From Felis catus (taxonomy: Eukaryota): a stretch of 63,792 nt of DNA. Shown piece after piece: positions 1,649 through 39,476 of this stretch (positions are counted from its first letter, which is position 1; every line of letters starts with the position of its first letter). Under the pieces are notes generated by a model. The model saw nothing but the letters and a program-made list of their open reading frames with translations. It was not told where the DNA came from and made no database searches. The translations under genes and the position numbers were made by a program. The stretch lies in the NCBI RefSeq assembly GCF_018350175.1, contig NC_058377.1, forward strand, positions 59,830,001 to 59,893,792. The letters run 5' to 3'.

Positions 1649-1693
1649 ATGGCTCCTGTAAAGATTAGCCACATCGTATCATTTTCCTCTCAG
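1649..1693 (+). CDS. XNDC1: XNDC1 coding exon 1 (MAPVKISHIVSFSSQ)
   Basis: ACAATGG start; CAG|GTATGT donor. Confidence 0.9.
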
Positions 1694-2711
1694 GTATGTT
1701 AATTAGCAGTTGTGATTTTTTTCTTGGCAACTGAAAGAAGTGACAAAAGTAGGAGACTTGGCTGCACTTTCAGGAAACTCCCAGTTTAATAGAAGAGACA
1801 TCGTCCCTTCTTTGGGAATCCAAAGTCAAAGGAGGACACACAGCTCTTGCCCTCAGGTTGTTCCCAGAGCAACGCAGGGTGCATAAAAGAAGTGTTCCTG
1901 GGAATTGAAGGTAGAGAGGAAACAACTTCAGGATTCCACCCTTAGTTTGAAGGGAACTGGCAAACCCATAGGCCCAAAGTCTGTACCAGGGTTCCTAGAA
2001 GGGCAGTTTAGTTACTCTGTCATTGAGAGCACACCGGGACATTCAAGGTCATTCCTGACCTGTGAGGACATCACCCCCACCATCAAAAGTGATCTCAACC
2101 TCCTCCCTAAAAATTCACTTTTGAGAAATTCCAATTATCCAGATTAGATCTAGATGCTGAGGCCTAAGCCCAGGATTTATACCATGTGGTGATTCTTAAG
2201 AACTTCCCACCCTTTCCTTTGCTGTCATTTCTATCCATACCTTTTCTCCCCACTCTTCTTCACCTTCTGTTGCCCTAGTCTTTCTCAAAGGATGCCATTG
2301 GCATTTTGGGTGGGATAAATCTGCATTTATAGCAGTATCATTTACCTGATGAGGTAATTATCATCCATGGCCTTCAGACCCTAATGACAGTAATGCTCCC
2401 TGGTTATGATGACAGTCAAAAACATCCCCACTCATTTCAGAAAGACTCTTAGAGAGCCTTTTGGAACTAATATATCAACTCCTAAGTGAAAGAAAATAAA
2501 AATTGCCCATATCCTTCTTACCTACATAGTCAGCCTAAATGGTTTTCTTCAAAGATTGAGCCTTATAAAATGCTAGAGAATGTTACTTATCCTCTAACAC
2601 TGAGGTTTTCAAACTGTTCTATGGGCACCCACTTCTAATTGAAGTGAGGTGGTGCATGTATGTCTCTAGACCCCCCAACCTGTGTTTTAACCAGAGCTCT
2701 GTTTTTTTTTG

Positions 2712-2767
<56 letters not shown>

Positions 2768-5700
2768 CTTAGTGTAAGATTTCAGCTAAAAGGAAGGATT
2801 TTATTGCTAAAACAAAAAACAAGATTGAAAACCATGAGTATAGACTCCCTCCCCTTTACTTATGGATGAAAGAATTTAGATCCAGAGAGAGAAAGTAGTT
2901 TGCTCAGGGCCTTGCCACCAAAAAATATCTAACTGTGGGTTAGAACCAAGAATTTCTCTCTCGGTGGGTGCCTGAGTGGCTTAGTCGGTTGTGCATCTGA
3001 CTCTGGCTCATGTCATGATCTCACAGTTGATGAGTTCGAGTCCTACACTGGGCTTGCTGCTGTCAACACAGAGCCCACTCCAGATCCTCTGTCTCCTCCT
3101 CTGCCCCTCCCCTGTTTGTGCTCTTTCTCTCTCTCTCTCTCTCAAAAATAGTTTTTAAAAATTTTTCTCTCTCGGTATTGCTATTGTTGCCTTGGAACAA
3201 ATCACTTTATTCCTACCCATTAGTTGTAAACTCAGAATAAAAAATCCTTGCCTTTCTTTTCTCATAGGGCTACTTTGAAGATAAAAAAATGTCTGTGAAA
3301 GTACCTTGTAAATGAAGTGAAATAGCATAGTGTGGCAGTTAAAAGCCTGGATTCAGAAAGCTAGATGTTCTGATTTTGGTTGGTTATTTGGCTTTGTGGC
3401 CTTGGGTAAGTTTCTGAACCTAAGCTTCAATGTATTGATCTGTTAAGTAAGAAGCAATAATAGCAACTAAACTAAATAGTAAAGTGTTAGGAGGATTAAA
3501 TGAGGTGGTTTGGTAAATGAAGGAGAGGTAAATGGTCTGTAAATCCCTGGCACATGATAGCTGTACTTTTATGGACTCCCATCTAGTGGTTCTTCTATCA
3601 TGGTAAAATGCCTGGAAAGGTTTGGGAATGTAGGAATCCCTCATTCATGGGCATCCTTTTTACCTTTCAGTTCAGTGAGGTTCCTGATTACTCCTTCTCT
3701 CTCTGACTTAGGATCCCAAGTATCCTGTGGAGAACTTGCTGAATCCAGACTGTCAGAAGGGACCTTGGCTCAGCTGCCCTCAGGACAAGAGTGGGCAGCT
3801 GAAAGTGGAACTCCAGCTGGAGAGGGCAGTGCCCATTGGCTACATTGATGTAGGTGAGTGAGTTCTCTGAGGTCTAGGAATCTGTGCGGGAGATGCAGGA
3901 GTCACATTCCCCTCCAAGTGCTCCATAATGTCTCAACTTGGTCTAGCTGAGCACTTTTCATGGAATAAGCCCTTCCTGGTCTGAAGGTGAGATGTGGCCC
4001 AGGTGCCCTTCTCAGGTGTATGGTGTTGGCAAACTCTGAGGTTTCTGTTCACATAGAATGCAATGGGAGGGGCACCTGGCTGGTTTTAGTGGGTAGAGCA
4101 TGTGACTCTTGATCTTCGGGTTGTAGGTTCGAGCCCCACATTGGGTGGAGAGATTACTTAAAAATAAAATTTGAAAAAAAAAAGTAGTGGGAATGGTATT
4201 CCCTGAATTATTTAACGTACGTGCCCTGGTTTGATCTGAATAGTCTGGGTGAAGCCTTAGGATGCTGACATAATTACAAATGCCAACAAATAGAACCTGT
4301 AAGCACCTATAAATATCATTGTCAAGAGGATGCTGGGGGATGGGCTCTGCAGACTAATCTGGGAAGTCTCCATAGGAATTTGCAGGTTGAGAAGGTTGGC
4401 CTTAGCATTCTCTGGAGTAGAGAACTAACAAAGACCATTGGCCTCAGCTCTGTAGGGCTCCCTAGCAGGGGTCTAATAGAGACAGAGATTAGCACTGCCT
4501 GCCAGAGCCAGAGGACAGGGAAGCAGCAAGTCTATTGAGTCAGGGAAGGTTTCTAGCTGGGAGGACCACTGTGAACCTTCATACTGTCATTTTGTGGACT
4601 GAGGTCTTATCCACTTCAGTTGCCAGTTCACTGTGTTCCTTGACCTTTCTGGGCTTCCAACCAGCTCTAGAATGGAAGAATGTCCTTTTCCCACCCGATA
4701 CCTTGTGTGCAATCAGGAGAGCATCTGTCTTCCCATCACCCTTAAATCCTTCTCTCAACCTTTTGTCCTCAGGTAACTGTGGCTGTGCTTTCCTGCAAAT
4801 TGATGTGGGCCGTTCTTCCTGGTCCCTGGACAGACCTTTTGTCACCTTGCTCCCTGCAACCATGCTTATGTCCCTGGCTGATTCAAAGCAGGGGAAAAAC
4901 CGCTCAGGGGTCCGCATGTTTAAAGATGGTAAGGAAGGCAAAAACAGAAATGGGAAATGGACAGCAAGAGAGACTATAAGAAAGAGATGCAGTCATGCTA
5001 AGCTAGACAACCCACTAGAGAGGGCCATGGAGCTGTTAGGTGGAATGGTGGGAGGGGCCTGTGAAGGGGCTTGGTCGTATCTGTGGGGGTATGGGGTAGG
5101 TGGTGAGTGAACAACTACTGGTATGTTTGTGTGAGTTCTCTGTGATGACAGTATATGGGAACCGAGAACATTTATGCACTATGATTTATATTTACACATG
5201 ATTCGGTGGAGCCTGATGTAGAGCCCGTATTTGTGAGTAGTGTTTTTATTTGTATAAATGTACATTGGTGTGAGTACGGTAGTCGCCCTTTATCCACAGT
5301 TTCACTTTCCATGGTTTCAGTTACCTACAGTCCACCACAGCCCAAAAGCAGATGATATTCCTTCTAACATATTATTAGAAGGTCAATAGTAGTAGCCTCC
5401 CTGTGTCACAATGCCTATGTCATTCACCTCACTTCATCTCATCATGTAGGCATTTTATCATCTCACGTCACCCCAAGAAGAAAGGTGAGCAGAGTACAGT
5501 AAGATATTTTGAGAGAGAGCGAGAGAGAGACCACATTCACGTAACTTTTATTATAGCCTGTTGTTATAATTGCTCTGTTTTATTATTGTTATTAATCTCT
5601 TCCTGTGCCTAACTCATAAATTAAGCTTTATCACAGGTGTGCACATATAGGAAAAAACATAGTATATACGAGGTTCGGTGCTATCTGTGGTTTCGGGCAT

Positions 5701-8700
5701 CCACTGGGGGCTTTGAACATATCCCCCACAGATGAGGAGGGACAACTGTATAAGTGTTAGTGTAGAATAAATGTTTATATAAGTGATGGAAGGCTACAGG
5801 ATGGATATGGTTAGATAGTATATAGTGCTTCCTGAGTTCCAATCCATGCAAATTTCTGTGTTCACTAGGCACTGCAGAACAGATATAAGATCTGATTCCT
5901 GGACTTTGGGGACTTACAGTCTAATAAGGATTTGTCTGTGTTGGAGCTGAGGTGTTTGTAATGTTGTGAAGGAACCATGATATGGGAGGGGCATACGAGG
6001 TACAGGGGATGAGGTGCTACCACAGAGTGCTGGGAAGTAAAGGTGAGAAGGGTTTGCAGTATTGCCATGTCACACAGTGACTATGGAGGCCATGGAGTGT
6101 TGTGAGGGAGGTGGAGGTCTCATGGTCCAGGAAGAGCAGATGTAGCTCATCTGATCCACTGGGCGAGTGGTCACCTCAGACCCCAACACTACAGGTACCT
6201 CCTGTTTAAAATGAGACATTGGGGGCACTTGGGTGGCTCAGTTATGTGTCTGACTCAATCTCAGCTCAGGTCATGATCTTACAGTTTGTGAGTTCAGGTT
6301 CTGCATTGGATTCTGCACTGACAGTGTGGAGCCTGCTTGGGATTCTGTCTCTGTCCCTCTCTCTCAGTCCCTCCCTCACTTGTGCGCTCTCTCTCTCTCT
6401 CTCTCTGTCTCTCTGTCAAAATAAATAAATAAACTGGGGCGCCTGGGTGGCTCAGTCAGTTAAGCGTCCAACTTTGACTCAGGTCATGATCTAATAGCTT
6501 GTGGGTTCGAGCCTCACATCAGGCTCTGTGCTGACAGCTCAGAGCCTAGAGCCTGCTTCAGATTCTGTGTCTTTCTCTCTGCCCCTCCCCGGGTCATGCT
6601 CTGTCTCTCTCTCTCCTTCAAAAATAAATAAACATTAAAAAATAAAATAAAGTTTAAAAAAAAAACTATCATAAGTAAATTGACACATTGGCAAGGTCCC
6701 TAGAGAGGTATAGAATGAGGATGTGCTGGGAACAGTGTGGAACCATGACAGAGGAGCGATGGTGGGAAGGCAAGGCACCAGGTCTGAGTGCACCTTAACT
6801 GGCCTGCTTAGCACTGCCAAACCCTGAGCACCAAAGCCTAAGGGGACAGTTACTGATGGCCTCCATTCCTTTTGTTGGACTTTAATCTGTATAGTCCCTG
6901 TCTTTCGTCTCCTCAGTATTGACCTTCTCTTTCTTTGTCCCTCCCATTCACACATTTCCTCTGCCTCTCATTTTCTTTCTTTTTGCCTTCAGAAGATTTC
7001 CTGGCTGCGGCCTCAGGTGAGCCCTGGGATCGACTTCGCCTGACCTGCTCCCAACCCTTCACACGTCAGCAGTCTTTTGGTCTGGCCTTCCTCCGGGTGT
7101 GTTCCTCCCTGGACTCCTCAGATGACCCTGTGGGGGATCTCTCTGCTCCCGGGAGCACTACGCTAAGCCAGGTATGTACAATGGTGGAACAAGGACTTCA
7201 TATTTTCCCACTTTTCTCAGTTTCAGGTTAGAAGACTGGGGCTTGATTGAGGGATAAACACAGAAACCCACCTTCCCCCCCACCACACACACACATTCAA
7301 GTAAAAACAGAAATGGGCTTGCTACCTTTCCTTACAGCTAAGAGTGAATGCCTCTCCATCCCTTTTGCCCTTGGGAGATTCAAGGCAGTGAACCTTCAGT
7401 GCAGTGTACACAAAGCTGTAGGGCCATTGGTTCTTTAGCAAGAATGAAATTTCTTTTTGGATTCAGACTTAATCCACTTTACGTTTAGGTTCCCGTGGGC
7501 TACAGCTTTCATCAGACTTTTCCTTCTAGCACCTGAAAGTCCCAGGGCTCACTTACTATCTCTCTGTCATTGTTGTTGCCTGACCCACCTGCCAGGAAAG
7601 CCAGTTATAATGTTAGATATGTGTTCTGCAATTTCATTTGTTTTCCTACTTTCTCTCCCTGTACAACACACACATGCTGCTAAGAGAAGATGGATAGGTA
7701 TCTGGTCAGTTTGCCTCCCCTCTTCTCAGCCAGTTTTCTAGTTATTTTTTATTCCTCAGCCTATTCTGAATCCTCCTGCTTTCCTGTCACTGTGTCTTCA
7801 TTTATCTTTCCAGTACCCTCTACCATAATTCACTCACAAATACAAAGATGGAATCACACAAAGCAAGAGTTGTACAATTCTAGAGGTCAAAAATACTTAG
7901 AGATTATCAAGCCCCAGCCACCTCATTTTATGTGTCAGCTAGGGACACTTGCATATTCAGATTCACATGGTGAACCAGAGCAGAAGACGGACTAGAAATC
8001 AGGTCATCTGTCATTATACCACAGTGCTTCCTATGCACGTAATACACCTCTAGAAGCTCCAAACATCCGGGGCACCTAGTGGCTCAGTCGTTTAGGTGTC
8101 TAACTCCTGGTTTCAGCTCAGGTCGTGATCTCATGGTTTGTGGGATTGAGCCCCACGTTGGGCTCTGTGCTGTTGGCTCAGAGCCTGCTTGGGATTCTCT
8201 GTCTCCCTCTCTCTCTCTCTCTCTTTCTCTCAAAATAAATAAATAACTGTAAAAAAAATGAAGTTCCAAACATCTGACATAACCAAAAGAAGTTCAGTTC
8301 CAGGAGTGAACATTACAAGTGTCGCTCTTGTTGAGGTTACTGAGAAAAACAGACCGAGCATCAGAAGACAAAATGGAGGAGGAAGAGGAGATGCTTCTGT
8401 AGTACAGCCTCGGGAGAGACCCAGAGAACGGAGACCAAGTAAAGCCTGGTCTGAGATTTACTCCTCCTTCATGGGAAGGGCTAAAAAATGCAGCAGGACC
8501 AGTGGAAGCCGCTCCATGTGCTCTGCCAGGTTCCAGTATTGTGGTGCCAGGGGGCTGACACGAATGGAGCTACAGCCCTGTGGGCCTGGCCTCAATAAAA
8601 TGGAAGCTTTGTGAGATTAGGGACCTGTTTGTCTTGTTCCATACTGAGTCCTGGCAGCTGGAACAGTGCCTAGAACAAAGTAGGCTTTTAGAATAACTTA

Positions 8701-11700
8701 CCTTTCAGGGGCAAGTTGTAGATAGGATCACCACCATAAAGTTTACCATCCAAACTGAGACATTTGGAGAGGAAAAAGAGTGCTATTAATTACATGGAGA
8801 CAACAGTATTGTCCCAGGCAAACCAGGACATACGGTCTCCCTAATTATAGGCTAAATAAGGGCTTCTTTTGGCCATCTAAATTACTCTGCACCTTTAAGA
8901 CCAAGGAGGGAGTCAGCAACTCCAGAACCATAATGTTAGAAGGACCTTGAACATCAACAGCAGAGTGAAACATACTGCACATACCTCAGTGAAACCACAG
9001 GGAAAGAAATTCTAAAATGTGTCTACAAGAGAGGGTTGATGCATGGAAACAGATTGATGGCACTCAATTTTATAATTTAAAATGTCTAAAATTTAAGGTG
9101 TATTGTTCTAATGGTATATTATAGTGAAAGCAAAACATACGGGCTTTTAACCCCGTGACATAGGGTCTTTTATGGCACTGGTTTTCCAGTTAGGAAACCG
9201 AAGCACAAAGAACTTTAGTGAGATGTTCCAGGTCACACTGCTAAATAAGTCTTAGAGTGGATTTGAATCCAGGCCACTGACTCCATGTAACCTGTGCTTG
9301 GAAGCTCAGTTCCTAATGATTAATCTCACTTAGAATTAAATAAACCATAAATTCTTCACACCCATCTAGTTACCCTTTCTAGTGGTATTTGCTCTAAAGT
9401 ATATGAGACAAGGTAAAGAAAAAATAGAAGCCCAGGAAAATTAAAATATTTCTAAATTAATGCTGCATCCAAGATGAGATTGTAATGGCAATTAAAAAAT
9501 ATTAAACGGTAGGGGCACCTGGGTGGCTCAGTCGGTTGAGCATCCGACTTCGGCTCAGGTCATAATCTTGCAGCTCTTGAGTCCAAGCCCCACATCGGGC
9601 TCTGTGCTGACAGCTCAGAACCTGCATTCTGCTTCAGATTCTGTCTTCCTCTCTCTTTTCCTCTCCCCTACTCATGCTCTGTCTCTGTCTCTGTCTCTGT
9701 CTCTCTCTCAAAATAAATAAACATTAAATAAAAAATTTTTTAAAAATATTAAACGGTAAATGTGATTACATACATACATACGTAAACAAGCTGTGAATGT
9801 GAGTAAAAATACTACTTCTCATGTTTGCAGAATGAGGCCAAAATCATGCTTTACAAGAAAGATGTTTACCTTTAAAAGAATCTCTCAGGGGCGCCTGGGT
9901 GGCTCAGTCGGTTGGGCGTCCGACTTCGGCTCAGGTCATGATCTCGTGGTCTGTGAGTTCGAGCCCTGCATCGGGCTCTGGGCTGACAGCTCAGAGCCTG
10001 GAGCCTGTTTCGGATTCTGTGTCTCCCTCTCTCTCTGACCCTCCCCTGCTCATGCTGTGTCTCTCTCTGTCTCAAAAATAAATAAATGTTAAAAAAAAAA
10101 TTTTTTTTTTTAAAATAAAAGAATCTCTGATAGGGGCGCCTGGGTTGCTCAGTTGGTTAAACGATTGACTTCTGCTCAGGTCATGATCTCATGGTTTGTG
10201 AGTTCAAGCCCCACGTCAGGCTCTGTGATGACAGCTCAGATCCTGGAGCGTGCTTCAGATTCTGTGTCTCCCCCTCTCTCTGCCCATCCCCTGTTCATGC
10301 TGTCTCTATCAAAAATAAATACATATTTTAAAAATAAAAGAATCTCCAATAGAAGAATCAACTGTAAATTAAAGACAAAGTTTTTTCATTTTTTTAAATT
10401 CAAGGGAAAAAGGAAATTTGGAAAAATAAAAAAGGAAATAGGTGCAGGTGAATTGACAGATAAATTGAATAGACAAAATAGAAACTGTAGCACATACCAC
10501 ATAAATAAAATCTAGGTAGAAATGATCTCTTGCATGATTATCGCACGTAGAAATTTTTGGAGTTAGAAGTAGAGAGGTTTATAAAATGCCTGTGATAGTT
10601 ACATGGAGAGGCTAATGGTAGAAAAGAGACTTGAGGTATCCATACATACATACACACATACACATCTCTTTCTATAAATGGCTAGAAATGGTGGCTTAAA
10701 TTGGTAGGTTTTTAGTTGTAGGTGAACAAAATTTTCACAAAATCATACTGGAAATTAAATAATATTATTAATATTTAGAAGATAAAAATGATAAAAATGT
10801 CCCCAAAGAGTTCAGAATAGAACTATTCTTAAGTACGGAGAAATATATGGGTATGCTTTGTTTCTTTCATGTAGGTGTATAAAGAGATAAGTGATTGGAG
10901 TTTTGTACCTACATGAGTGAATTTTATATATGTACAGATTTAAACTACAGCGTATATGCTTTCAAAAGTTCACACATGATTATTAGTCCCATGACCCCGT
11001 TTTTCCCAACAGCATATATTTGATTCTGGGGACTTTCAGGATCATAACAAAACCCTTAGCATTGAGGAACTAACTATACAACATTACTGAATCTCGTATC
11101 TTAGAGCTGGAAGAGAGTGTGCACACAAGCAAAGGTACTGTGTAAAGTTATAGAAAACATGCTTAGTCATTAAGCTGAAGTCCTCAGGTTTGGGAATAGC
11201 CCTGGTACAGGTGGCAGCGTCCCCTGGTGGTGAATGTCTGTAGTTCATATTGCTCCATTTTCTTCTCAGGGTTCTGATGCTCAGGAGTCTGGTCCAAGCC
11301 CCTGGCTGGCTAATCCTTCCATTCGGAGGACATTCTTCCCAGATCCCCAAACGTATGTAGCTACCAGAACGGAGGTCCTTGTCCACTTCTCAGTTCTTTC
11401 TCCCAAAAAGAGAAAGGCTACCAAGTCACTCACAGGCACACAAGCCCTGCCTGGTTTCCCCCCACTTAATCACAACCTCGGGACCTAACCCTATCTGTAT
11501 ATCAAACTGGCTTTCTTGGTTAGAGGTCACTGACTTAGGTAAGAGGAATGGAGTCTCTTTTCTGAGTGAAACCGAGTGCTCTCTGTTTCCCTGCAGGAGC
11601 ACCAAGGAAATTTCAGAGCTTAGGAATATCCTAAAGCAGCTGCAGCCAGGGGCTTTGGGACGTTCAGCCTGCATGGTACTTTCAGCTGCCCGCAGGGTGC

Positions 11701-14700
11701 CCCCCGTGAGTATGGCAAGCACAAAAAACATCCAGGCAGAACCAGGTCCCAGTCATCCAGCCGGCACAGGTGAGTCCCCATGACCTACCTTTGGCTCCTT
11801 GCTCTCCCTGGCACCATCCTTCCTCCCTGAATCCACTGCTGCTATAGAAGGGTGGCTTACAAATGGGACTTCCTGTGGGAGAAAAGACCATTGTCAGTGT
11901 CTTGTTACCAGAGGAGAAGTCAAATACTATATAGTAATTGAAATCAGGAATCCTTATTTCTTCGAGCCTCAATTCCCCCATATTCACAATGAAGGAATTA
12001 AACCAAATAGTATTTCGGCCTTTTGCAGTATTAATGTTTTGTGATCACTTCAGAAAGACAGTTAAGTCAGGGTGATGGTGTATGGAGCTTGTTGGGGAAA
12101 TAAAGTAGGGGAATAGCATGGTTTTATCACAGAGGAAGAAAAGATTCAGCATTTTGGAGCTCCTACTTAGCTCTAGACATTGCTAACACACTTCTACTAA
12201 CTTAACTATTTAATGTTCATAACAAATTGTGAAGTAAATACTGTTATACTCATTTTACAAAAGAATCTGAGGTATTTCTGAATCACACAGCTAATAAATG
12301 GCAAAACCAGGATTTGAACCCCAGAGTTCTTGTTCTTTTTACTGTTCTAGATAGCAAAAGAGAAAACAAGTAGAGTTCTCACTGAAAACCTTTGGTTTCA
12401 CTCATTGCTTCACTGGGAAAATTTTTAAAAAGGAAACAGGTGATTTGTCATTTCAAAGAACTGACCAAAATTACTGAAATAGTAAGGATATTATCTCATG
12501 GCAGAAATAGGGTACATTGTTTGTCTACTGTTGCACGATGAATTACCCCAAAACTTGGTAGCTTATGATAGTATTTATCATTTCAGTTACTCATGGTTAA
12601 GAATCTGGGCATGACTTAACAGCATCTTCCAGCTCCAGATCTGACACAAAGCTATAGTCCTTTCAAGGCTCCACTGGAAATGATCTGCTCCCAAACTCAG
12701 TCACATGGTTGTTAGTAGGATTTAGTTCCTCGTGGGTGGTGGTGGGACTAAGGCTTCCCTCAATTCCTTTGCCATGAGAGCCTCTCCCAGGAGCATCTCA
12801 CAATGTGGAAGCTTGCTTCATCAGAGTGAACAAGCTAGAGGGCAAGAGAGAGCATGCTAGTAAGAAAGAAGTCAGTCCGGGGCGCCTGGCTGGCTCAGAA
12901 GAGCATGTGACTCTTGATCTTGGGGTCGAGAGTTCAAGCCCTATGTTGGGTATAGAGATTACTAAAAATAAATAAACTAACTAAAAAAAGAAACAAGTCG
13001 GTCTTTTATAACCTGATCCCAGGAATGGCATCCCATCACTTTTGCCATATTTTATCCATTAGAAGCAAATTACTAGGTTCTGCCTAAATTCAAGGGGAGG
13101 CATGACTACCAGGAGGCAGGAATCAATAGGAGTCCTTTCAGAAGCTGTCTACCACATAAGGAAGGATGTAGTTTATTATTTTAAGAGACAGAAAATGGGA
13201 AGGAGCTAACCTTTTGGGGGCACCCAGTCAGCTGGACACTGGAGCTATGAAAGTACCTACAAACTTTCTATATAACTCCTATATATAACTCCTAACTCCT
13301 ATATAAAGTGTTTCATAAGTTCTGAATAGCTAGACAAATGGTTGTTGCTGGATTTTGTTGCCACTCATTTGACAGATATCTGAACATCTCTGTGTTCAAG
13401 GCTCCATGCTAGGTGTCAGGGATTCCACAGCACAGAAAATAGCAGTTCTCCTACCCTAATGGAGAGGCATCTCCATGTAATATAAGTAAGTCTACAACTG
13501 CAAACTGTGATGAGTACTTCAAAGGCAAAGCATAATAGGATGATCGGATTTAGATTAGAGAATTCAGGGAAAGTGCCTCAGGAATTAATATTTCATGTGA
13601 GACTTGAAGAGTGAGAAAGAATTAACCAGGAAAAATGGATAGAAAGACTATTCTTTTTTTTTTAATTTTTTTTTTTTCTTCAACGTTTTTTATTTATTTT
13701 TGGGACAGAGAGAGACAGAGCATGAACGGGGGAGGGGCAGAGAGAGAGGGAGACACAGAATCGGAAACAGGCTCCAGGCTCCGAGCCATCAGCCCAGAGC
13801 CTGATGCGGGGCTCGAACTCACGGACCACAAGATCGTGACCTGGCTGATCGTGACCTTCAGGAACCGTCCTGAAGTCGGACGCTTAACCGACTGCGCCAC
13901 CCAGGCGCCCCTAGAAAGACTATTCTTAAAAGAAAGAACATCATGAGGCGCCTGGGTGGCTCACTGCATTAAGCATCCAATTCTTGGTCAGCTCAGGTCA
14001 TGATCTCACGGTTCATGGGTTCCAGCCCTGAGTCTGACTTCTTGCTGACAGTGCGAGGCCTCCTTGGGATTCTCTCTCTCTCCCTCTCTCTCTATCCCTC
14101 CTGTATGCATGTGTGCTCTTTCTCAAAAATAAATAAACGTTAAAAAAGGAAAAAGGGGCACCTGGGTGGCTCATTCAGTTGAGCATCTGTGAGTTTGAGC
14201 CCCGTGTCTGGCTCTGTGCTGACAGCTCAGAGCCTGGAGCCTGCTTCAGATTCTGTATCTCCCTCTCTCTCTGCCCCTCCCCCTCTGTCTCTCTCTTTTT
14301 CTCTCTCTTTCTCTCTCTCTCTCAAAAATAAACATTTAAAAGCAACAAAAAAAGAAAAAAGAAGGAACATCATATGTGAAGGGCTTTTTGTTAATGAGCT
14401 AGATTTAATGAGTATTTCTAACACAGAGCTCAGACCAGAAGAGCAAAACTCAGAGAATAATGTGGGCAGGACGAAGAGACGGAAAGTGCAAGCTCACAGG
14501 TGAGTAGATCAACCTGAAAGAACCAAATCACCTCCCCAAACCTTATTGTCCACCTACACCTGTCCTTCCCCCACTTGTGTCTTAGTTAGATCACCGAGTA
14601 CCATTGTGTCTTGATCTCATGGTCTAGACCCAGAGGGTAGTAGAGAAAAGATGTCCTTGTCCACATGTTGTCAACTAAGCAAGGAGGTAGCTCTGTAGTA

Positions 14701-17102
14701 AATCAGAATCTGAAGATGGGTACTCTGTATCTCATGGACTTCATTAAAATTGAAATCTTTTTCTGCTTTAAAGAACACTACCAAGAAAATAAAAAGACAA
14801 GTGACAGAATATGTGAGAAGATATTTGCATATCATATATCCAATAACGGACTTGTTTCTAGAATAATAGAGAAAGCTTACAGCTCAACAATAAAAAATAA
14901 CCTAATTTTTTAATGGACAAAAGATCTGAATAAACTTTCCTCCAAAGAAGGTAAACAAATGGCCAATAAGCACATGAAAAAATGCTTAATATCTTTAGCC
15001 ATTAGAGAAGAGCAAATCAAAACCACAGTGATCACACCCACTAGGATAGCTGTAATCAAAACGACAATAGCAGGGGTGCCTGGCTGGCTCAGTCAGTGGA
15101 GCATGCAACTCTTGGTCTCAAGGCTTTGAGTTCAAGCCCTACACTGGGCGTAGAATTTNNNNNNNNNNNNNNNNNNNNNNNNNNNNNNNNNNNNNNNNNN
15201 NNNNNNNNNNNNNNNNNNNNNNNNNNNNNNNNNNNNNNNNNNNNNNNNNNNNNNNNNNNNNNNNNNNNNNNNNNNNNNNNNNNNNNNNNNNNNNNNNCTT
15301 CAAAAACCTGAATATAGAGTTACCATAGGACCCGACAATTCCGCTCCTAGGAATAGACCCCAAAGAACTGGTAGCAGGTGTCCACACAAAAACGTATAGT
15401 CAAATGTTCACAGCGGCATTATTCATAATAGCCAAAAAGTGGAAACAACCCAAATGTCCATCAACTGATGAATAGATAAGCCAAATGTGGTGTATTTATA
15501 CAATAGAATATTGTTCAACCATTAAAAAAGAATGAAGTACCAACACACAATATGGATAAACCTTAAAACATGCTAAGTGAAAGTAGTCAGAAAAGACCAC
15601 ACATTATATGATTGCATTTACGTGAAATGTCCAGAATAGACAAATCCATACAGATAGAAAGTAGATGAATGGTTGCCAGGGTCCTGGTGAGGGTGGGTGT
15701 GGGAGTGACTACTAATGGGTTTAGGGGTTCTTTTGGGGGTGATAAAAATGTTCTGGAATCCGATAGTCGTGGTGGTGACACAACCCTGTGAATATCCTAA
15801 AAATGTTGAATAGTATAATAGGAAGAATTTTATGGGCTGTGCATTATATCTGAATAAGAAAAAATAATTTTAAAAACCTGAGAGAAATAATAGAACTTCT
15901 GTTCTCAGATGGTCAAGGTTAAGTGACCTCCCTCAAGTTGGGTACATCAAGTGGGAAAACCAGGACTCCAACCAGGGCTTTTGGCTCCACATCAATGAAT
16001 CCACACTCTTCTGTCCTAACTGGAGGCTCCTTTAGCCTTTGTGGCCTATTATTAATAGCTGGTCTTTATTCTCTGTCACAGGCCTTTATCCAGCTCGAAC
16101 TCTCGGCCAAACCGGAGGGGGATAGCAAAGGCAGGGCAGAGAGAACACCAGCGACCCCAGGCCCAAAGCAGTGGGGTCCAGGATAGTGCTCTGTGCCCCA
16201 TCTGCTCAGGTGAGCTGCTGGGGCATAGGGGTTATTGTGGGACTGCTAGGTATCCCTTGAGGCAGGACTAGGAGACCTGGGAATGCTGCCAGGGAACATT
16301 CGAGCTGGGACTCCTGCTCTTCTCCACACACATACAAGTCTATATTGAGGACATGCTCACATTGTGTTGGCCCAGCTGAGGCAGGGACACAGGCCCTGTC
16401 CCCAGGAGAAACATGAAACAAAACAATATAAAATACTAGCAGAGAGGGCCTAGCATTTCCTTCACAGCTTTTTTTCTCCATGTCCCAGTTTTCTAAGTCC
16501 CTGTTCAAATGGTACTTATTTGCCAAGTCTTGTCTCATCTTAGATAATCTGTCCCAACCTGCAACCCTGCAGCATTCTCTGATTCCCCAGCGCTTAGCAC
16601 TTCTCCCTTCTGCTTTGTGTCACAGTTGCTTGTGGCCTTAGCTTATCTTTACCCTTGACCTCTACAGTCCAGAAGGACAGGCCTGGGTTTACACCCCTCA
16701 GCTCCTGGCACAGTGTAAGGCATACAGTAAACCCTTGATAAATGTTTGGTGGATTCATGAGCGGATAATGTCAGGAGTAGACTACCCAGCCAGAGTAAAC
16801 TTCCTGCAAAAACAGACCGCACTGGGAGCAGGCCCAGCTTTGCTAACCTCCTTCTCTCCCCCTTAGGCTCCTTCAGCATCAAGGTTCTTCCCTGGCATGC
16901 TGCGACTTGTGGAGAGACCTCCCCACCTCACCCAGCCTCTCCCTCCTCATCACCATCTTCATCGCAGTCTGTACTGTGGGTGTCCTCCCCGGACAGCTCA
17001 CCACCCACTTCCTGGGTCCAGTGCCCTTTATGCCAGTTGGACTTCTCAGCAGGAGAAGTAGAAGAACATGCCAGCATGTGTGGGGAGTTCCCTCAGGCAT
17101 GA
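1649..17102 (+). CDS. XNDC1: XRCC1 N-terminal domain-containing protein 1 (XNDC1/XNDR), 9 coding exons, 404 aa
   Basis: Exons 1649-1693, 3712-3853, 4773-4928, 6993-7171, 11270-11352, 11597-11769, 14427-14499, 16082-16209, 16867-17102; all GT-AG, phase-consistent, 1215 nt without internal stop. Begins MAPVKISHIVSFSSQDPKYPVENLLNPD (XRCC1-NTD-like), ends CPLCQLDFSAGEVEEHASMCGEFPQA*. Confidence 0.9.
2718..2766. repeat. (CA)n microsatellite
   Basis: ~24 uninterrupted AC units. Confidence 0.95.
2966..3162 (+). mobile_element. Can-SINE (SINEC)
   Basis: tRNA-derived head, (CT)n, A-tail; TSD TTTCTCTCTCGGT. Confidence 0.88.
3712..3853 (+). CDS. XNDC1: XNDC1 coding exon 2 (DPKYPVENLL...GYIDVG)
   Basis: TTAG| acceptor, TAG|GTGAGT donor; XRCC1-NTD-like sequence. 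Confidence 0.92.
4068..4182 (+). mobile_element. Short Can-SINE
   Basis: GGGGCACCTGGCTGG head, A-rich tail. Confidence 0.8.
4773..4928 (+). CDS. XNDC1: XNDC1 coding exon 3 (NCGCAFLQIDV...GVRMFKD)
   Basis: CTCAG| acceptor, ATG|GTAAGG donor; lies within ORF 4535..5110. Confidence 0.92.
5277..5748 (+). mobile_element. MER44/Tigger7-type non-autonomous TcMar DNA transposon
   Basis: Degenerate terminal inverted repeats (CGGTAGTCGCCCTTTATCCACAG ... CACAGATGAGGAGGGACAACTG) flanked by TA; internal sequence resembles recalled MER44 consensus. Confidence 0.8.
6221..6663 (+). mobile_element. Two tandem Can-SINEs
   Basis: Heads at ~6221 and ~6436, each with (CT)n and AATAAA-rich tail. Confidence 0.88.
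6993..7171 (+). CDS. XNDC1: XNDC1 coding exon 4 (DFLAAASGEPWDRLRLTCSQPF...LSQ)
   Basis: TTCAG| acceptor, CAG|GTATGT donor; WDRxRxxCSQP motif of the XRCC1-NTD. Confidence 0.92.
8068..8258 (+). mobile_element. Can-SINE
   Basis: Typical head and tail; TSD AAG(C/T)TCCAAACATC. Confidence 0.88.
9512..10335 (+). mobile_element. Cluster of three Can-SINEs (9512-9741, 9888-10115, 10133-10335)
   Basis: Three GGGGC(A/G)CCTGGGT heads; TSDs AAAAATATTAAACGGTA and TAAAAGAATCTC. Confidence 0.9.
11270..11352 (+). CDS. XNDC1: XNDC1 coding exon 5 (GSDAQESGPSPWLANPSIRRTFFPDPQ)
   Basis: CTCAG| acceptor, AAC|GTATGT donor. Confidence 0.88.
11597..11769 (+). CDS. XNDC1: XNDC1 coding exon 6 (STKEISELRNILKQLQPG...)
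   Basis: TGCAG| acceptor, CAG|GTGAGT donor. Confidence 0.88.
12515..13155. mobile_element. MaLR (MLT1-type) LTR interrupted by a short SINE at ~12878-12990
   Basis: AATTACCCCAAAACTTGGTAGCTTA ... AGAAGCTGTCTACCACA resemble MLT1 LTR ends. Confidence 0.6.
13653..13911 (-). mobile_element. Young felid-type SINE (SINEC_Fc)
   Basis: Perfect 16-bp TSD TAGAAAGACTATTCTT; CpG-intact body. Confidence 0.92.
13946..14345 (+). mobile_element. Two Can-SINEs
   Basis: Heads ~13946 and ~14155. Confidence 0.85.
14427..14499 (+). CDS. XNDC1: XNDC1 coding exon 7 (LRPEEQNSENNVGRTKRRKVQAH), basic NLS
   Basis: CACAG| acceptor, CAG|GTGAGT donor; phase 1/2 fits neighbours. Confidence 0.85.
14730..15880 (+). mobile_element. 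Old LINE-1 3' end (L1M-type) with inserted SINE and N-gap
   Basis: ORF2-end/3'UTR motifs (GCCAAAAAGTGGAAACAACCCAAATGTCCATCAACTGATGAAT). Confidence 0.8.
16082..16209 (+). CDS. XNDC1: XNDC1 coding exon 8 (PLSSSNSRPNRR...ALCPICS)
   Basis: CACAG| acceptor, CAG|GTGAGC donor; first half of zinc finger 1. Confidence 0.87.
16867..17102 (+). CDS. XNDC1: XNDC1 coding exon 9 (end of zinc finger 1, Ser/Pro linker, zinc finger 2, stop)
   Basis: CTTAG| acceptor; SFSIKVLPWHAATCGE...WVQCPLCQLDFSAGEVEEHASMCGEFPQA-TGA. Confidence 0.87.
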
Positions 17103-17836
17103 GCCATGAGGTCCTGTGGTTTTGGCCCCCCTTTCCTCAGTGACTAAAACTGGGGAGTGGATCTCTTGACCGAGGAGAAGAGCTAATAAGGCCAGGCTGC
17201 CCTCTCTCCTTCTCTCCACTCATTCCCCCAGGACTCTGCCTCAGGGTACCTCTGGGCCCAGCCTGCTCTCCACTCCCAGTTGTCAAGGCTTCTGTCACCA
17301 TGGCACCCTGTTCTCCCAAAGACAGTTCCATCCTTTTCCCCTTTGGAACTTCTGGGATAGAATTGATGATCTCTCTGGGGCTTTGGGGCATAATCCAGAA
17401 CATCTTCCTCTCAGTGAGTGATGAGCATCCTCATGCCCATTTTCCTGAAAGGAAAACTGGACCCAGTGAAAACAGATGGGACCCTGTGGTATACTGGGAA
17501 GTTGAGTGCTTTTTGAGCTTAACTCCCAGTATCCTTGGTGGGTTCCCTCCCTACATACAATCAAGTAACAGTGTTGCTGTATGACCTTAAGCAACTTGAG
17601 TTCTTCATCTTGGACTCAATTAAGCATCCTGCTTGCAGAGCAATTCCAGAGATCAGATGGGTTAATGACTAAGGAATAGTTCTAGGCTTGGCTTTGGAAC
17701 CCTGGACAAAACCCAGTCCCCACCTGTACAATGAGGCAGTTGGACCAGAGGGTCTCTAAGGTCCCCTCCACCTATAACATTCTAAATTCTATTCCCACAC
17801 CTTCCTTGAGCAACTGTGTCCTCTCCCCTTTCCCAG

Positions 17837-30000: not shown

Positions 30001-31079
30001 CCAATGTGGGGCTTGAACTCATGACTCCAAGACCAAGAGTCACATGCTCTACTGACTGAGCCAGCCAGGCACTCCCACCCTCAAAAAATTTAATATCCAG
30101 GGGCACCTGGCTAGGTCAGTCAGTAGAGCATGTGTCTCTTGATCCGGGGGTTGTGAGTTCAAGCCCCACATTGAATGTAGAGCTTACTTTAAAAATTGTT
30201 TAATTAATTAATTAATATTGAACCCAAATTATTATTTTCTGTATAGTTCTTATTCAAGTTTCTCCAGTTGACCCGCCCCCCCCAAAAGTCTTTCTACCCT
30301 TTTAAAACTCTGAGAACCTATCTGGGGTCATGTGTTTCATTTTGTTATCATATCTCTTTAGTCTCCTTTATTTAAAAAAAAATTTTTTTTAATGTTTATT
30401 TATTTTTGACAGAGAGAGAGAGAGAGAGAGACAGAGCATGAGCGGGGGAGGGGCAGAGAGAAGGAGGGGCAGAGAAGGAGACACAGAATCCGAAGCAGGC
30501 TCCAGGCTCTGAGCTGTCAGCACAGAGCCCAACGCGAGGCTCAAACTCAGACGGCAAGATCATGACATAAGCCGAAGTCGGACGCCAACTGACTGAGCCA
30601 CCCAGGGGCCCCTCTCTTTACTCTCCTTTAATCTGCAACATGCCCTCTACCTTTTCTTTGTCTTTCATAACAAATGAACTTTTTTGAAGAGTACAGATCA
30701 AAGTATACTGTAGAGTATTCTACAGTTGGGATTTATCTGAGTAGTTCCTCATGATAAGATTAAAGTTAAGCAGTTTTGTCAAGAACACAACGTAGCTGAT
30801 GATGTGTATTTTCCACTGCATCACATCAGGAGACAGAAGATGTCAGTGTAGCCCATTGGGAGGCCCAATGGTCTATCAAACCTCTTCACTGTAAAGGTAC
30901 TAAGGATGCCCTTTAGTAATATAAAGATATGCTGATACCGTGTGACTAACCTGTTCCCTTGCAACCTTTCACTCAGTGGCTTTAGCATCCATGAATCAGT
31001 TATTATAATAGTGGTTTCAAGATGGTGATCTTCTACTACTGCCATTCTTTCTATATATTTTTAAAAATTTTTTAACATT

Positions 31080-31118
<39 letters not shown>

Positions 31119-32743: not shown

Positions 32744-32775
<32 letters not shown>

Positions 32776-37622: not shown

Positions 37623-37671
<49 letters not shown>

Positions 37672-38837: not shown

Positions 38838-39476
38838 GTTTCTGTTCTGGATGTCAGATGCCTCCAGAGAGTGTAAGGATCTCTGTCTCTTCACGTTTTG
38901 AGATCCCTTTCCCTTGTCCCTGAAATGGACTCTTGTGGGAGCAGGACAGACAGAAATGTCTTGCTATGGGGTCCCAGGTATCTTGGGTTTAGGCTCCTAC
39001 TTGAGTTCCTTCACATCATTAGTGGAAAGGATTCTGGACTGGGAGGCAGGGAGCCTGGTTTTAATACTAACTCTTTGATCTTGAGCAAGTTGCTTCTTTC
39101 CTTAGCTTTGCATTCCTCATCTGACAAATGGNNNNNNNNNNNNNNNNNNNNNNNNNNNNNNNNNNNNNNNNNNNNNNNNNNNNNNNNNNNNNNNNNNNNN
39201 NNNNNNNNNNNNNNNNNNNNNNNNNNNNNNNNNNNNNNNNNNNNNNNNNNNNNNNNNNNNNNNNNNNNNNNNNGAATCTCTGACTCTTAAAGTTTCTGGT
39301 TTGCAAGTTGTGGTATGTGACAGGGGTCTGCATAGGAGACCATGTCTAGGAGGGATCAAGAAGTCATCCTTTTAGTCCCTCAGTTTCTGAGTCTGGCAAG
39401 GCTAGAGCAGAGTAGATGGTCTGGTCTCATAGAATAAATCAATCATGAAATTTGATGTCACCACACTGCAATACTG

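Follow-up and report, generated by a model that had tools for sequence, protein, structure and literature searches.

The analysed window, a 63,792-nucleotide stretch of the domestic cat (Felis catus) genome, contains on its forward strand the nine coding exons of XNDC1 (also XNDR or 'XNDC1N'; Table 1). The cat locus is the felid orthologue of this gene, a stand-alone protein-coding gene located just upstream of TRPC2. The exons, spanning 1649-17102, splice into a single open reading frame of 1215 nt, and the spliced-frame translation gives 404 codons and a TGA without internal stops. By splice-site inspection, all introns follow the GT-AG rule and each has a polypyrimidine tract. The start ATG lies in a good Kozak context (CACAATGG), and 5' of it an in-frame stop is found with no ATG in between. 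Intron 8 splits the first zinc finger, with CPICS encoded in exon 8 and a Gly codon across the junction, and because of this the finger 1 motif is unbroken only after splicing. Exons 7 and 8 align to adjoining stretches of the fishing-cat RefSeq protein (residues 261-283 and 285-326), and therefore no coding residue is lost at the run of N between them. Continuity of the intron 7 letters across this gap is irrelevant to the reading frame. Further downstream, TRPC2 exons (19960-38522) are followed by two ART genes and then a nicotinic receptor subunit.

Table 1. Coding exons of cat XNDC1 and associated features (window coordinates).
Feature	Position	Strand	Evidence
Exon 1 coding, aa 1-15 (start ATG; opens XRCC1-like domain, MAPVKISHIVSFSSQ)	1649-1693	+	donor GT, Kozak, upstream in-frame stop; 15/15 identical to RefSeq felid proteins
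Exon 2 coding, aa 16-63	3712-3853	+	AG/GT sites; Pfam XRCC1_N 31.8 bits, profile 16-60; 47/47 vs fishing-cat isoform X1
Exon 3 coding, aa 63-115 (GNCGCAF to VRMFKD)	4773-4928	+	Pfam XRCC1_N 50.4 bits, profile 62-111; PDB XRCC1 alignment
Exon 4 coding, aa 115-174 (WDRLRLTCSQPF, FGLAFLR; domain end)	6993-7171	+	Pfam XRCC1_N 35.3 bits, profile 117-148; PDB XRCC1 NTD E 8e-7
Exon 5 coding, aa 175-202	11270-11352	+	splice sites; conserved block PWLANPSIRRTFF 11300-11338, aa 185-197
Exon 6 coding, aa 202-260	11597-11769	+	splice sites; ISELRNILKQL helix 11610-11642; conserved block LGRSACMVLSAA 11655-11690, aa 222-233
Exon 7 coding, aa 260-284	14427-14499	+	splice sites; RTKRRK 14468-14485, aa 274-279, candidate NLS
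Assembly gap, 139 N, non-coding, within intron 7 (14500-16081)	15159-15297	.	N run
Exon 8 coding, aa 284-327	16082-16209	+	splice sites; finger 1 first half, CPICS 16194-16208; skipped in annotated 375-aa felid isoforms
Exon 9 coding, aa 327-404 + TGA	16867-17102	+	splice sites; 77/77 vs fishing-cat isoform X1
Within exon 9: finger 1 second half to Cys341, Ser/Pro linker, finger 2 Cys379-Cys398	Cys341 16908-16910; finger 2 17022-17081	+	sequence

The spliced product is identical at 394 of 398 positions to RefSeq 'protein XNDC1N isoform X1' of the fishing cat (Prionailurus viverrinus, 404 aa, XP_047735084). By exon from 1 to 9, the identities are 15/15, 47/47, 51/51, 58/59, 26/27, 56/57, 23/23, 41/42 and 77/77, an agreement that, judged on the protein alignments, is far above chance, and exons 1-7 are 100% identical to one domestic cat isoform. 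A preliminary description of this DNA had proposed a full nine-exon, 404-residue XNDC1; splice sites, reading frame and the RefSeq match all confirm it, and every motif named there was found in its place. We regard the identity and architecture of the product as practically certain. The gene was published as XNDR in 2011 by Frankenberg et al., who found it to have nine coding exons, to be broadly expressed and to have a promoter separate from that of TRPC2 (PMC3170594). It is the same gene as in the cat, sharing the nine coding exons, 404 residues, 99% identity, exon boundaries and position upstream of TRPC2, and the words 'zinc' and 'finger' do not occur in that paper. In the databases, hundreds of orthologues are named XNDC1N, 'XRCC1 N-terminal domain containing 1' or 'TRPC2-like', and the earlier remark that the gene is often mislabelled as TRPC2 is borne out by many of these names. 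From the near-identity to RefSeq, the 2011 description and the TRPC2 neighbour, it follows that the gene model was already known. XNDC1 is thus not new; it is named and in RefSeq but unstudied, and Xndc1 'retrieved zero results in PubMed' (PMC12876460).

The N-terminal 150 residues of XNDC1 are homologous to and collinear with those of XRCC1 (1xna, 3k75, 3k77, 3lqc), with about 36% identity and the same fold. Pfam, PDB sequence and fold searches agree on this XRCC1-type domain, as first proposed. Exons 2-4 each score above the Pfam XRCC1_N cut-off in collinear order, and whole orthologues reach 159-179 bits; exon 3 aligns to XRCC1 residues 62-111 in 3k77, 1xna and 3k75, the orthologue profile matches the PDB XRCC1 NTD with an E of 5e-49, and the best Foldseek matches are 3k75, 3k77, 3lqc and 1xna. 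The homology ends at residue 159. In agreement with the earlier reading, Pfam scans of the cat exons and of whole orthologues found no BRCT domain, so XNDC1 lacks all the domains by which XRCC1 binds PAR and ligase III, and in the tree the XNDC1 clade is separate from XRCC1 with support of 97/97. Residues R109 and F67 of XRCC1 correspond to R110 and F69 of XNDC1, which are kept in 40 and 36 of 41 orthologues, respectively, whereas Thr stands in place of V86 and Gln in place of E69, and the redox pair C12/C20 is absent, being replaced by Phe12/Pro20. R109A and V86R are known as Pol beta interaction mutants of XRCC1 (PMC8405949). With R109 kept and V86, E69 and C12/C20 changed, binding of Pol beta by XNDC1 can be predicted only in part from these residues, and we consider such binding rather unlikely.

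As seen in the alignments, conservation of XNDC1 comes in islands. Across all orthologues, mean pairwise identity is 0.70 in the N-terminal domain, 0.61 and 0.56 in the fingers and 0.62 in the LxRxA.MVL block, and 0.20-0.25 in the linkers. The exon 5 block PWLANPSIRRTFF reaches a mean pairwise identity of 0.92 among placentals, and birds, reptiles, coelacanth and teleosts have it in recognisable form. In the block LGRSACMVLSAA, A232 is invariant and L222, R224, A226, M228, V229 and L230 are at least 90% conserved among 41 orthologues, and a similar 'SRAARLV' occurs in crustaceans. Helices are predicted at aa 204-216 and 224-234. The basic cluster RTKRRK, reported before, is present and may serve as a nuclear localisation signal; a basic cluster at most 110 aa upstream of finger 1 is found in 156 of 213 family members.

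The spacing in the two C-terminal fingers is C-x2-C-x11-H-x3-C, and exactly two fingers with this spacing are present in 213 family proteins. In two orthologue sets, of 41 and of 47 sequences, none of the eight zinc ligands varies, and the Cys/His spacing is strictly conserved. Structure prediction gives each finger a beta-beta-alpha fold, with pLDDT of about 80-87. Among solved structures the tandem RAP80 fingers come closest, matched by the profile with both fingers in register (E 2.8e-7) and by a single shrimp sequence (E 8.4e-4), followed by the WRNIP1 and RAD18 UBZ (profile E 0.002-0.003); exon 9 by itself finds WRNIP1 UBZ as its best match in the PDB sequence search. Like XNDC1, RAP80 (UIMC1, aa 505-582, PDB chain 9sqy_I) carries two fingers of this spacing, about 35 residues apart and near the C-terminus, and its finger 1 has CP[LI]C..F....[IV]E.HA..C in common with XNDC1. 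In contrast, finger 2 of RAP80 has the canonical His-Val-Asp-Ser-Cys where XNDC1 has His-Ala-Ser-x-Cys, and RAP80 contains SIM, UIM and AIR regions but lacks an XRCC1-like domain. The RAD18/WRNIP1 UBZ4 (2mre, 5vf0, 3vhs, 3vht) resemble XNDC1 in how the ligands are spaced, in the beta-beta-alpha fold predicted for XNDC1 and in the Cys-Pro-[Val/Ile]-Cys beta-loop, but their Leu-Asp is an invariant Ala-[Ala/Ser] in the XNDC1 fingers, and the scores are marginal (E 0.002-0.02, under Pfam cut-offs). By these profile matches, we take the XNDC1 fingers to be homologous to the RAP80 tandem fingers and more distantly to the RAD18/WRNIP1 UBZ.

The earlier assignment of two UBZ4-like fingers therefore stands for the spacing and fails for canonical UBZ4. 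The ubiquitin-contacting helix Asp at His+2 (RAD18 D221, WRNIP1 D37) occurs in none of the 213 family proteins, which have Ala or Ser there in both fingers. No Pfam UBZ model reached its gathering score in cat exon 9 or the closest orthologues, exon 8, which encodes the first half of finger 1, had no Pfam hit of any kind, and just 5 of the 47 orthologues had a zf-WRNIP1_ubi match at E <= 0.01. In both fingers the first two Cys still enclose the Pro-hydrophobic pair that in WRNIP1 contacts ubiquitin Ile44 (PMC4370504), with the Pro invariant in 213/213. Since the helix Asp is missing throughout, ubiquitin reading is plausible but unproven, and we hold ubiquitin binding to be possible at somewhat less than an even chance.

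Our overall reading is that felid XNDC1 is probably a nuclear scaffold with a client-holding N-terminal domain and a docking finger pair. The canonical nine-exon mRNA encodes a 404-aa non-enzymatic protein composed of the XRCC1-type N-terminal beta-sandwich (aa 1-152), the short linear blocks PWL..TFF and LxRxA.MVLxA, the NLS-like basic cluster and the finger pair. In this most likely mode, the N-terminal domain would hold a client, as XRCC1 does with DNA polymerase beta on gapped DNA, and the finger pair would dock XNDC1 on a chromatin-borne mark or partner, for which ubiquitin is the first candidate. Some scaffold role in genome maintenance is conceivable, just short of an even prospect. The nuclear localisation, damage recruitment and polymerase coupling put forward before are putative, and the earlier interpretation as a whole is partly supported.

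Alternatively, the fingers may form a RAP80-type or 'third group' CCHC module that binds DNA, another modifier or a protein partner and not ubiquitin via the known surfaces, and the mark read by the scaffold would then not be ubiquitin; we give this a minor but real share of the probability. The family signature His-Ala-[Ala/Ser]-x-Cys is invariant from crustaceans to mammals, unlike His-Leu-Asp-x-Cys, and a third group of UBZ that binds in a different mode has been proposed (PMC4370504). The best match is RAP80 finger 1 (HAMYC), and the ubiquitin role of the RAP80 fingers is weak and 'secondary', their deletion lowering K63-chain processing only marginally; however, cross-links put ubiquitin near these fingers (bioRxiv 10.64898/2026.06.05.730395). 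The retained beta-loop Pro-Ile/Val also speaks for ubiquitin, as does a Glu at His-2 of finger 2 in 188 of 213 proteins, which would correspond to the ubiquitin-contacting Asp164 of FAAP20 in a register counted only from residue numbers (Asp164, Leu167, Ala168, Leu171) in PMC4370504. Improbable in our view is the stricter proposal that both fingers are true UBZ4 ubiquitin readers of the RAD18/WRNIP1 kind and that the N-terminal domain binds an X-family polymerase, which, if true, would mean a ubiquitin-dependent, PAR-independent route for recruitment of Pol beta or lambda. The UBZ4 spacing, predicted fold and beta-loop, the WRNIP1 and RAD18 UBZ among the best non-NTD PDB matches, the retained R110 and F69 and the lack of a BRCT domain are consistent with it. 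Against it, RAD18 D221 is needed for ubiquitin binding and D221A abolishes binding to ubiquitylated H2A (PMC3157352), and this Asp is the very residue absent from the family; moreover, His+1 is Ala in the alignments and Leu in WRNIP1 and RAD18, the UBZ Pfam models stay under their cut-offs, and V86 and E69 are replaced.

Still less probable is that the main felid product is a finger-less 375-aa form, with the 404-aa form minor or non-functional and only the N-terminal domain functional, as in human. Such an isoform is annotated in RefSeq for seven felid species; it skips exon 8 and loses both fingers, and its C-terminal 92 residues correspond to a shifted frame of 16865-17140 with 96-100% identity (100% for domestic cat and cheetah). 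In human and chimpanzee the gene is split, with exons 6-10 about 68 Mb from exons 1-5, and the finger half is lost (PMC3170594) and therefore dispensable there, which also counts against the scaffold reading. However, the exon 8 splice sites are good, and the 404-aa isoform X1 is annotated in one felid as well as in seal, otter, raccoon dog and many other mammals. The finger frame of exon 9 is 100% identical to fishing cat and 87% to seal, on par with the domain exons, and the shifted frame has no homologues outside the felid models. That the exons are merely the N-terminal part of a long TRPC2 channel (a mouse-type XNDC1-TRPC2 read-through) and no independent gene is hardly credible: many database names read 'short transient receptor potential channel 2(-like)', one 1215-aa protein among the collected homologues joins XRCC1_N to ankyrin, TRP_2 and Ion_trans, and 2.9 kb downstream TRPC2 exons begin in the same orientation, but the in-frame TGA at 17100-17102 closes the frame just past finger 2 as in 213 orthologues (most ending at most about 20 residues after the last Cys, with 6 and 2 the commonest distances), separate promoters and expression were seen by RT-PCR in wallaby and platypus, with fusion splice sites not conserved outside mouse (PMC3170594), and in crustaceans and chicken the gene shows this architecture with no fusion to TRPC2.

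The XNDC1 architecture is kept from crustaceans to mammals, and the family therefore predates vertebrates. The crustacean members are new here, whereas the 2011 paper put the origin of the gene in jawed vertebrates (PMC3170594). As a point against the scaffold reading, the IMPC homozygous knockout is viable, and its listed phenotype is fusion of vertebral processes (PMC12876460).

The XNDC1 gene (also named XNDR and XNDC1N) is laid out in the window as nine coding exons on the forward strand. All eight introns have GT...AG ends with a pyrimidine tract before the AG, the exon phases are compatible, and the joined exons give 1215 nt, consisting of 404 codons and TGA with no internal stop, as checked with a local script. 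The start ATG stands in the context CACAATGG, and an in-frame stop lies upstream of it with no ATG in between. The nine cat exons were joined in the local script solely for frame, length and stops; homology searches were performed with single cat exons or database orthologues, the fold model is that of the fishing-cat (Prionailurus viverrinus) protein, the joined cat protein was used in neither, and the later profile and family searches employed non-felid orthologues only (alignment A2). The nine-exon, 404-aa ORF of the preliminary description is borne out by the splice sites, phases, length and orthologue collinearity, all of its motifs were found on the forward strand at the places it gave, and its observation is correct in every detail. 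Intron 7 contains an assembly gap, and since exons 7 and 8 match adjoining residue ranges (261-283 and 285-326) in the fishing-cat protein, this gap hides no coding residue and the reading frame is independent of it.

Positions of XNDC1 exons, conserved blocks, neighbouring genes, repeats and assembly gaps in the window
Feature	Position	Strand	Remarks
XNDC1 coding exon 1	1649-1693	+	GT donor, start ATG
XNDC1 coding exon 2	3712-3853	+	AG/GT sites
XNDC1 coding exon 3	4773-4928	+	AG/GT sites
XNDC1 coding exon 4	6993-7171	+	AG/GT sites
XNDC1 coding exon 5	11270-11352	+	AG/GT sites
Exon-5 block PWLANPSIRRTFF	11300-11338	+	aa 185-197
XNDC1 coding exon 6	11597-11769	+	AG/GT sites
Exon-6 block LGRSACMVLSAA	11655-11690	+	aa 222-233
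XNDC1 coding exon 7	14427-14499	+	AG/GT sites
XNDC1 coding exon 8	16082-16209	+	AG/GT sites
XNDC1 coding exon 9	16867-17102	+	AG acceptor, ends in TGA
XNDC1 intron repeats	2690-2765; 6219-6640; 8079-8270; 9500-10330; 13635-14335
Assembly gap, 139 N	15159-15297		inside intron 7 (14500-16081); repeats (carnivore SINE copies etc.) on flanks
TRPC2 exons	19960-38522	+	about 10 matches of exon size to a protein containing TRPC2; domains: ankyrin, TRP_2, ion transport
Two NAD:arginine ADP-ribosyltransferase (ART family) genes and nicotinic acetylcholine receptor subunit exons	40442-41263; 51368-52123; 57272-59821	-; +; -
Four more assembly gaps, outside XNDC1	32807-32950; 39132-39273; 62618-62801; 63617-63751		first within TRPC2 span

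The gene itself is already known, as it was named and published in 2011 and is modelled correctly in RefSeq for felids. When exon 4 was used as a query against 1.84 billion representative proteins, 75 proteins were returned, many of them about 400 aa long and beginning MAP.K..H.VSFSSQD, and hundreds of vertebrate proteins were listed when two of these relatives were used as queries in turn. Cluster look-up gave the 404-aa 'protein XNDC1N isoform X1' of P. viverrinus (XP_047735084), to which the XNDC1 of the window is identical, exon by exon, at 394 of 398 compared residues, and exons 1-7 show 100% identity to a Felis catus RefSeq isoform. Exon 1, which supplies positions 1-15 of the Pfam XRCC1_N profile, is identical to the orthologues at 15/15 residues, and the boundaries of the cat exons correspond to residue ranges in the proteins of seal, fishing cat, murid, wallaby and platypus. 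The 2011 report described XNDR with nine coding exons (numbered 2-10), in all jawed vertebrates, with broad expression from a promoter distinct from that of the vomeronasal-specific TRPC2, and found it disrupted in human and chimpanzee by a separation of about 68 Mb between exons 1-5 and exons 6-10 (PMC3170594). As in that report, XNDC1 is followed directly by TRPC2 in the same orientation. The 'long TRPC2' annotations mentioned in the preliminary description are real, as one database protein joins XRCC1_N, ankyrin, TRP_2 and Ion_trans. Farther along, the window agrees with the usual mammalian surroundings of TRPC2, which include ART genes and a nicotinic receptor subunit; by position the former are probably ART5 and ART1, and the latter is probably CHRNA10. 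Transcript support is provided by the 2011 RT-PCR and cDNA data, the RefSeq models and orthologues from Logan read assemblies. Many orthologues are known from these assemblies alone, with the longest contigs at 1.5-3.2 kb, and because the cat coding sequence is spread over 15.4 kb, the contig size points to spliced RNA.

The N-terminal part of the protein belongs to the XRCC1 type, as the preliminary description had it. Pfam XRCC1_N matched exons 2, 3 and 4 at 31.8, 50.4 and 35.3 bits, respectively (gathering score 21), and the three exons cover profile positions 16-60, 62-111 and 117-148 in collinear order. Exons 3 and 4 also align with XRCC1 residues 62-111 and 118-156 in PDB entries 1xna, 3k75 and 3k77. 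Exon 2 alone returned nothing relevant from the PDB sequences although Pfam XRCC1_N recognises it, which is a limit of sensitivity and not a contradiction. Using a profile of 41 orthologues, the XRCC1 N-terminal domain entries were matched over residues 1-164 with an E-value of 5e-49, and four XRCC1 entries (3k75, 3k77, 3lqc and 1xna) were the top Foldseek matches of the AlphaFold2 model of the fishing-cat protein. Apart from the XRCC1 domain, the whole model matched nothing but generic jelly-roll folds, so that Foldseek is uninformative on the zinc fingers. Compared with XRCC1, in which two BRCT domains follow the N-terminal domain, XNDC1 is devoid of BRCT, for which no match was obtained in any cat exon or in ten whole orthologues, and homology between the two proteins stops at residue 159 in hhalign.

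Within the domain, several functional residues of XRCC1 can be compared with those of XNDC1. Cuneo and London reportedly described, in 2010, a Cys12/Cys20 redox pair in this domain, the oxidised form being PDB 3lqc; this pair is not kept in XNDC1, which has Phe12 (40/41 orthologues) and Pro20 (38/41) instead. Mutation of XRCC1 V86 or R109 disrupts binding to Pol beta (PMC8405949; PMC12190888). R109 corresponds to Arg110 in 40/41 orthologues and F67 to Phe69 in 36/41, whereas V86 is replaced by Thr87 in 38/41 and E69 by Gln71 in 39/41, and thus the Pol beta surface is partly kept. Binding of Pol beta by the XNDC1 domain is possible but not predictable from sequence, and the polymerase link drawn in the preliminary description was overstated.

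The C-terminal part carries two CCHC zinc fingers, of which finger 1 is split by intron 8 between exons 8 and 9 and finger 2 lies in exon 9. Both have the spacing C-x2-C-x11-H-x3-C of the UBZ4 class, and their eight zinc ligands are invariant in the alignments of 41 and of 47 orthologues, so the Cys/His spacing for which the preliminary description proposed a conservation check is indeed conserved (47/47). In 213 proteins that we collected, there are exactly two fingers of this kind, 12-45 residues apart (median 34), and the C-terminus usually lies 6 or 2 residues past the last Cys and in most cases within about 20. A beta-beta-alpha fold is predicted for each finger in the AlphaFold2 model of the fishing-cat protein (pLDDT about 80-87), with strands 319-321 and 328-330 and helix 334-340 in finger 1, and strands 376-378 and 385-387 and helix 388-397 in finger 2.

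Two relationships were considered for these fingers. First, they may belong next to WRNIP1 and RAD18. Cat exon 9 alone had the WRNIP1 UBZ as its top match among PDB sequences, with a non-significant E-value of 0.23, and the orthologue profile gave WRNIP1 at 0.0055 and RAD18 at 0.012. Second, they may be related to the finger pair of RAP80, whose motif was described in PMC1865050. RAP80 505-582 likewise holds two C-x2-C-x11-H-x3-C fingers in tandem at a C-terminal position, and its similarity to the XNDC1 pair is significant: a profile with crustacean rows added matched both RAP80 fingers in register at E 2.8e-7, compared with about 0.002-0.003 for WRNIP1 and RAD18, and a single shrimp XNDC1 protein matched RAP80 at 8.4e-4. 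The profile match to RAP80 depends on the crustacean rows and is absent with orthologue profile A1. The pair is therefore best described as RAP80-like, inside the wider class with UBZ4 spacing.

Whether such fingers would bind ubiquitin is a separate question. Fingers of the WRNIP1/RAD18 group contact ubiquitin at Ile44 through a Pro-Val pair (WRNIP1 Pro21-Val22) placed between the first and second Cys, and at Arg42 through an Asp in the helix (WRNIP1 D37; PMC4370504). RAD18 no longer binds ubiquitylated H2A when it carries D221A (PMC3157352). In alignment with the orthologue profile, D221 falls at His+2 relative to the zinc-binding His. In XNDC1, the Pro of Cys-Pro-[Ile/Leu/Val]-Cys is present in both fingers of all 213 proteins. 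At His+1, Ala is found in 213/213 for finger 1 and 209/213 for finger 2, and His+2 is Ala or Ser in every finger 1 and Ser in 197/213 for finger 2, but never Asp or Glu in either. Lacking the Asp at His+2, the fingers fail the canonical ubiquitin-binding UBZ4 group on one defining residue. Finger 2 has Glu at His-4 in 192/213 and at His-2 in 188/213, and, by a count from the residue numbers in PMC4370504, His-2 would be the position of the ubiquitin-contacting FAAP20 Asp164. None of the Pfam UBZ models reached its cut-off in exon 9, the sole finger-bearing cat exon with any Pfam match, the best being UBZ_FAAP20 at 13.9 bits (cut-off 25); the best orthologue scored 25.9 bits against zf-WRNIP1_ubi (cut-off 26.4), and 5 of 47 orthologues matched this model at E <= 0.01. 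The HMM scan suggested in the preliminary description therefore places XRCC1_N above gathering and the UBZ models below cut-off. In RAP80, finger deletion lowers K63-chain processing only marginally, and the region has been called a possible secondary surface (bioRxiv 10.64898/2026.06.05.730395). Altogether, assignment to the UBZ4 class is right by spacing and predicted fold, and the beta-loop Pro agrees with it, but with regard to the helix Asp and the Pfam cut-offs the term 'UBZ4-like' promised too much; ubiquitin binding by these fingers is conceivable, and we lean somewhat against it.

Conservation was measured as mean pairwise protein identity per segment over all orthologues, in place of dN/dS, and it falls in islands. 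The N-terminal domain has an identity of 0.70, the exon-6 block 0.62, finger 1 0.61, finger 2 0.56 and the exon-5 block 0.47 (0.92 in placentals), compared with 0.20-0.25 in the linkers. The exon-6 block, which has the pattern L-x-R-x-A-x-M-V-L-x-A and lies in a predicted helix, equals the zinc fingers in conservation; it is seen in crustaceans as 'SRAARLV' and matched no known motif. The exon-5 block is kept from teleosts to mammals and lost in several frogs. Its TFF lies at a distance from the domain similar to that of the Phe-Phe REV1-binding motif of XRCC1. The REV1-interacting region (RIR) occurs in XRCC1, Pol eta and Pol kappa and, as reportedly defined by Ohashi et al. in 2009, consists of Phe-Phe followed by four residues without proline. 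The cat block reads TFF-PDPQ, and FFP[D/E]P is the form in most amniote orthologues; we rejected TFF as a counterpart of the XRCC1 LFF, because the homology found by hhalign ends at 159 and the prolines break the RIR rule. Placentals conserve the basic cluster RTKRRK, a comparable cluster is located upstream of finger 1 in 156 of the 213 proteins, and it may reasonably be taken as a putative NLS.

Although XNDR was placed in jawed vertebrates alone (PMC3170594), the same predicted architecture is present in crustaceans, which is new in this analysis. Among the proteins returned by the exon 4 search was one of 665 aa from the mantis shrimp Oratosquilla, labelled 'uncharacterized protein', and with this protein as the query, matches were obtained in Penaeus, Panulirus, Macrobrachium, Petrolisthes, Cherax, Armadillidium and an ostracod, most of them 460-750 aa long. 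The hosts are thus mantis shrimp, penaeid shrimps, spiny lobster, prawn, porcelain crab, crayfish, isopod and ostracod. Of the full-length malacostracan proteins examined, most carry the N-terminal XRCC1-type domain and, at the extreme C-terminus, two fingers of the same spacing with the His-Ala signature; the exceptions are one prawn model without fingers and two partial crayfish models. The ostracod model ends inside finger 1. No XNDC1 from other groups than vertebrates and crustaceans was among the best-scoring matches listed. A maximum-likelihood tree of the domain, which is unrooted and includes only four XRCC1 rows (frog, butterfly and two others) and the 99%-identical fishing-cat protein as the felid row, places crustacean and vertebrate XNDC1 together and splits them from XRCC1 with support of 97/97. 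The architecture is therefore older than vertebrates.

As an item of genome annotation XNDC1 is ordinary; the finding is of value because it draws attention to a 'dark' gene. We found no functional paper on XNDC1 in the literature, and Xndc1 is reported to have 'retrieved zero results in PubMed' (PMC12876460). Its product unites a domain of the type with which XRCC1 binds polymerase beta and tandem fingers of the type found in RAP80, and XRCC1 and RAP80 are both central scaffolds in the DNA-damage response. Retention of the domain, the fingers and the exon-6 block from crustaceans to mammals, and of the exon-5 block from teleosts to mammals, speaks for a genuine function under selection. Judged by its domains and their conservation, XNDC1 is best read as a putative nuclear scaffold without enzymatic activity, whose XRCC1-type domain would bind a client, with the two fingers serving to attach it to a mark or partner. 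The candidate DNA-repair adaptor of the preliminary description therefore stands in its architecture, while 'UBZ4' and the polymerase went beyond the data. A fuller version would make XNDC1 an ancient XRCC1 paralogue predating the protostome-deuterostome split, with a domain holding a gap-filling polymerase or gapped DNA and RAP80-type fingers, marked by the invariant His-Ala-Ser signature, that read a ubiquitin-family or other chromatin mark by an undescribed mode; we regard this combination as improbable. If true, chromatin that is damaged or stalled would receive factors of base-excision or single-strand-break repair by a PAR-independent route, one lost piecemeal in human and chimpanzee. 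The chance that XNDC1 is a real repair scaffold, a second and BRCT-free XRCC1-like one, is modest. The homozygous Xndc1 knockout of the IMPC is viable, with fusion of vertebral processes as the listed phenotype (PMC12876460), and human XNDC1N, a 'missing protein' candidate with antibody staining in ovary, comprises the N-terminal half only (PMC10775140). Because the mouse knockout is viable and the gene is split in human and chimpanzee, the expected phenotype, and hence the interest, is limited.

Two minor observations concern the transcripts and introns of the cat gene. Intron 1 contains a (CA)n microsatellite, and the XNDC1 introns hold many carnivore SINE copies in both orientations, which show as recurring translations such as 'PGWLSQ'. 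Exon 8 (128 nt) is skipped in an annotated isoform, in which 14427-14499 is joined to 16867-17143 (+), the frame shifts and exon 9 stops at 17141-17143. The product has 375 aa, loses both fingers, and is annotated in seven felid records or species (Felis, Panthera, Acinonyx, Neofelis, Leopardus and Herpailurus/Puma); over the final 92 residues of this isoform, identity to the window is 100% in domestic cat and cheetah and 96-99% in the other felids.
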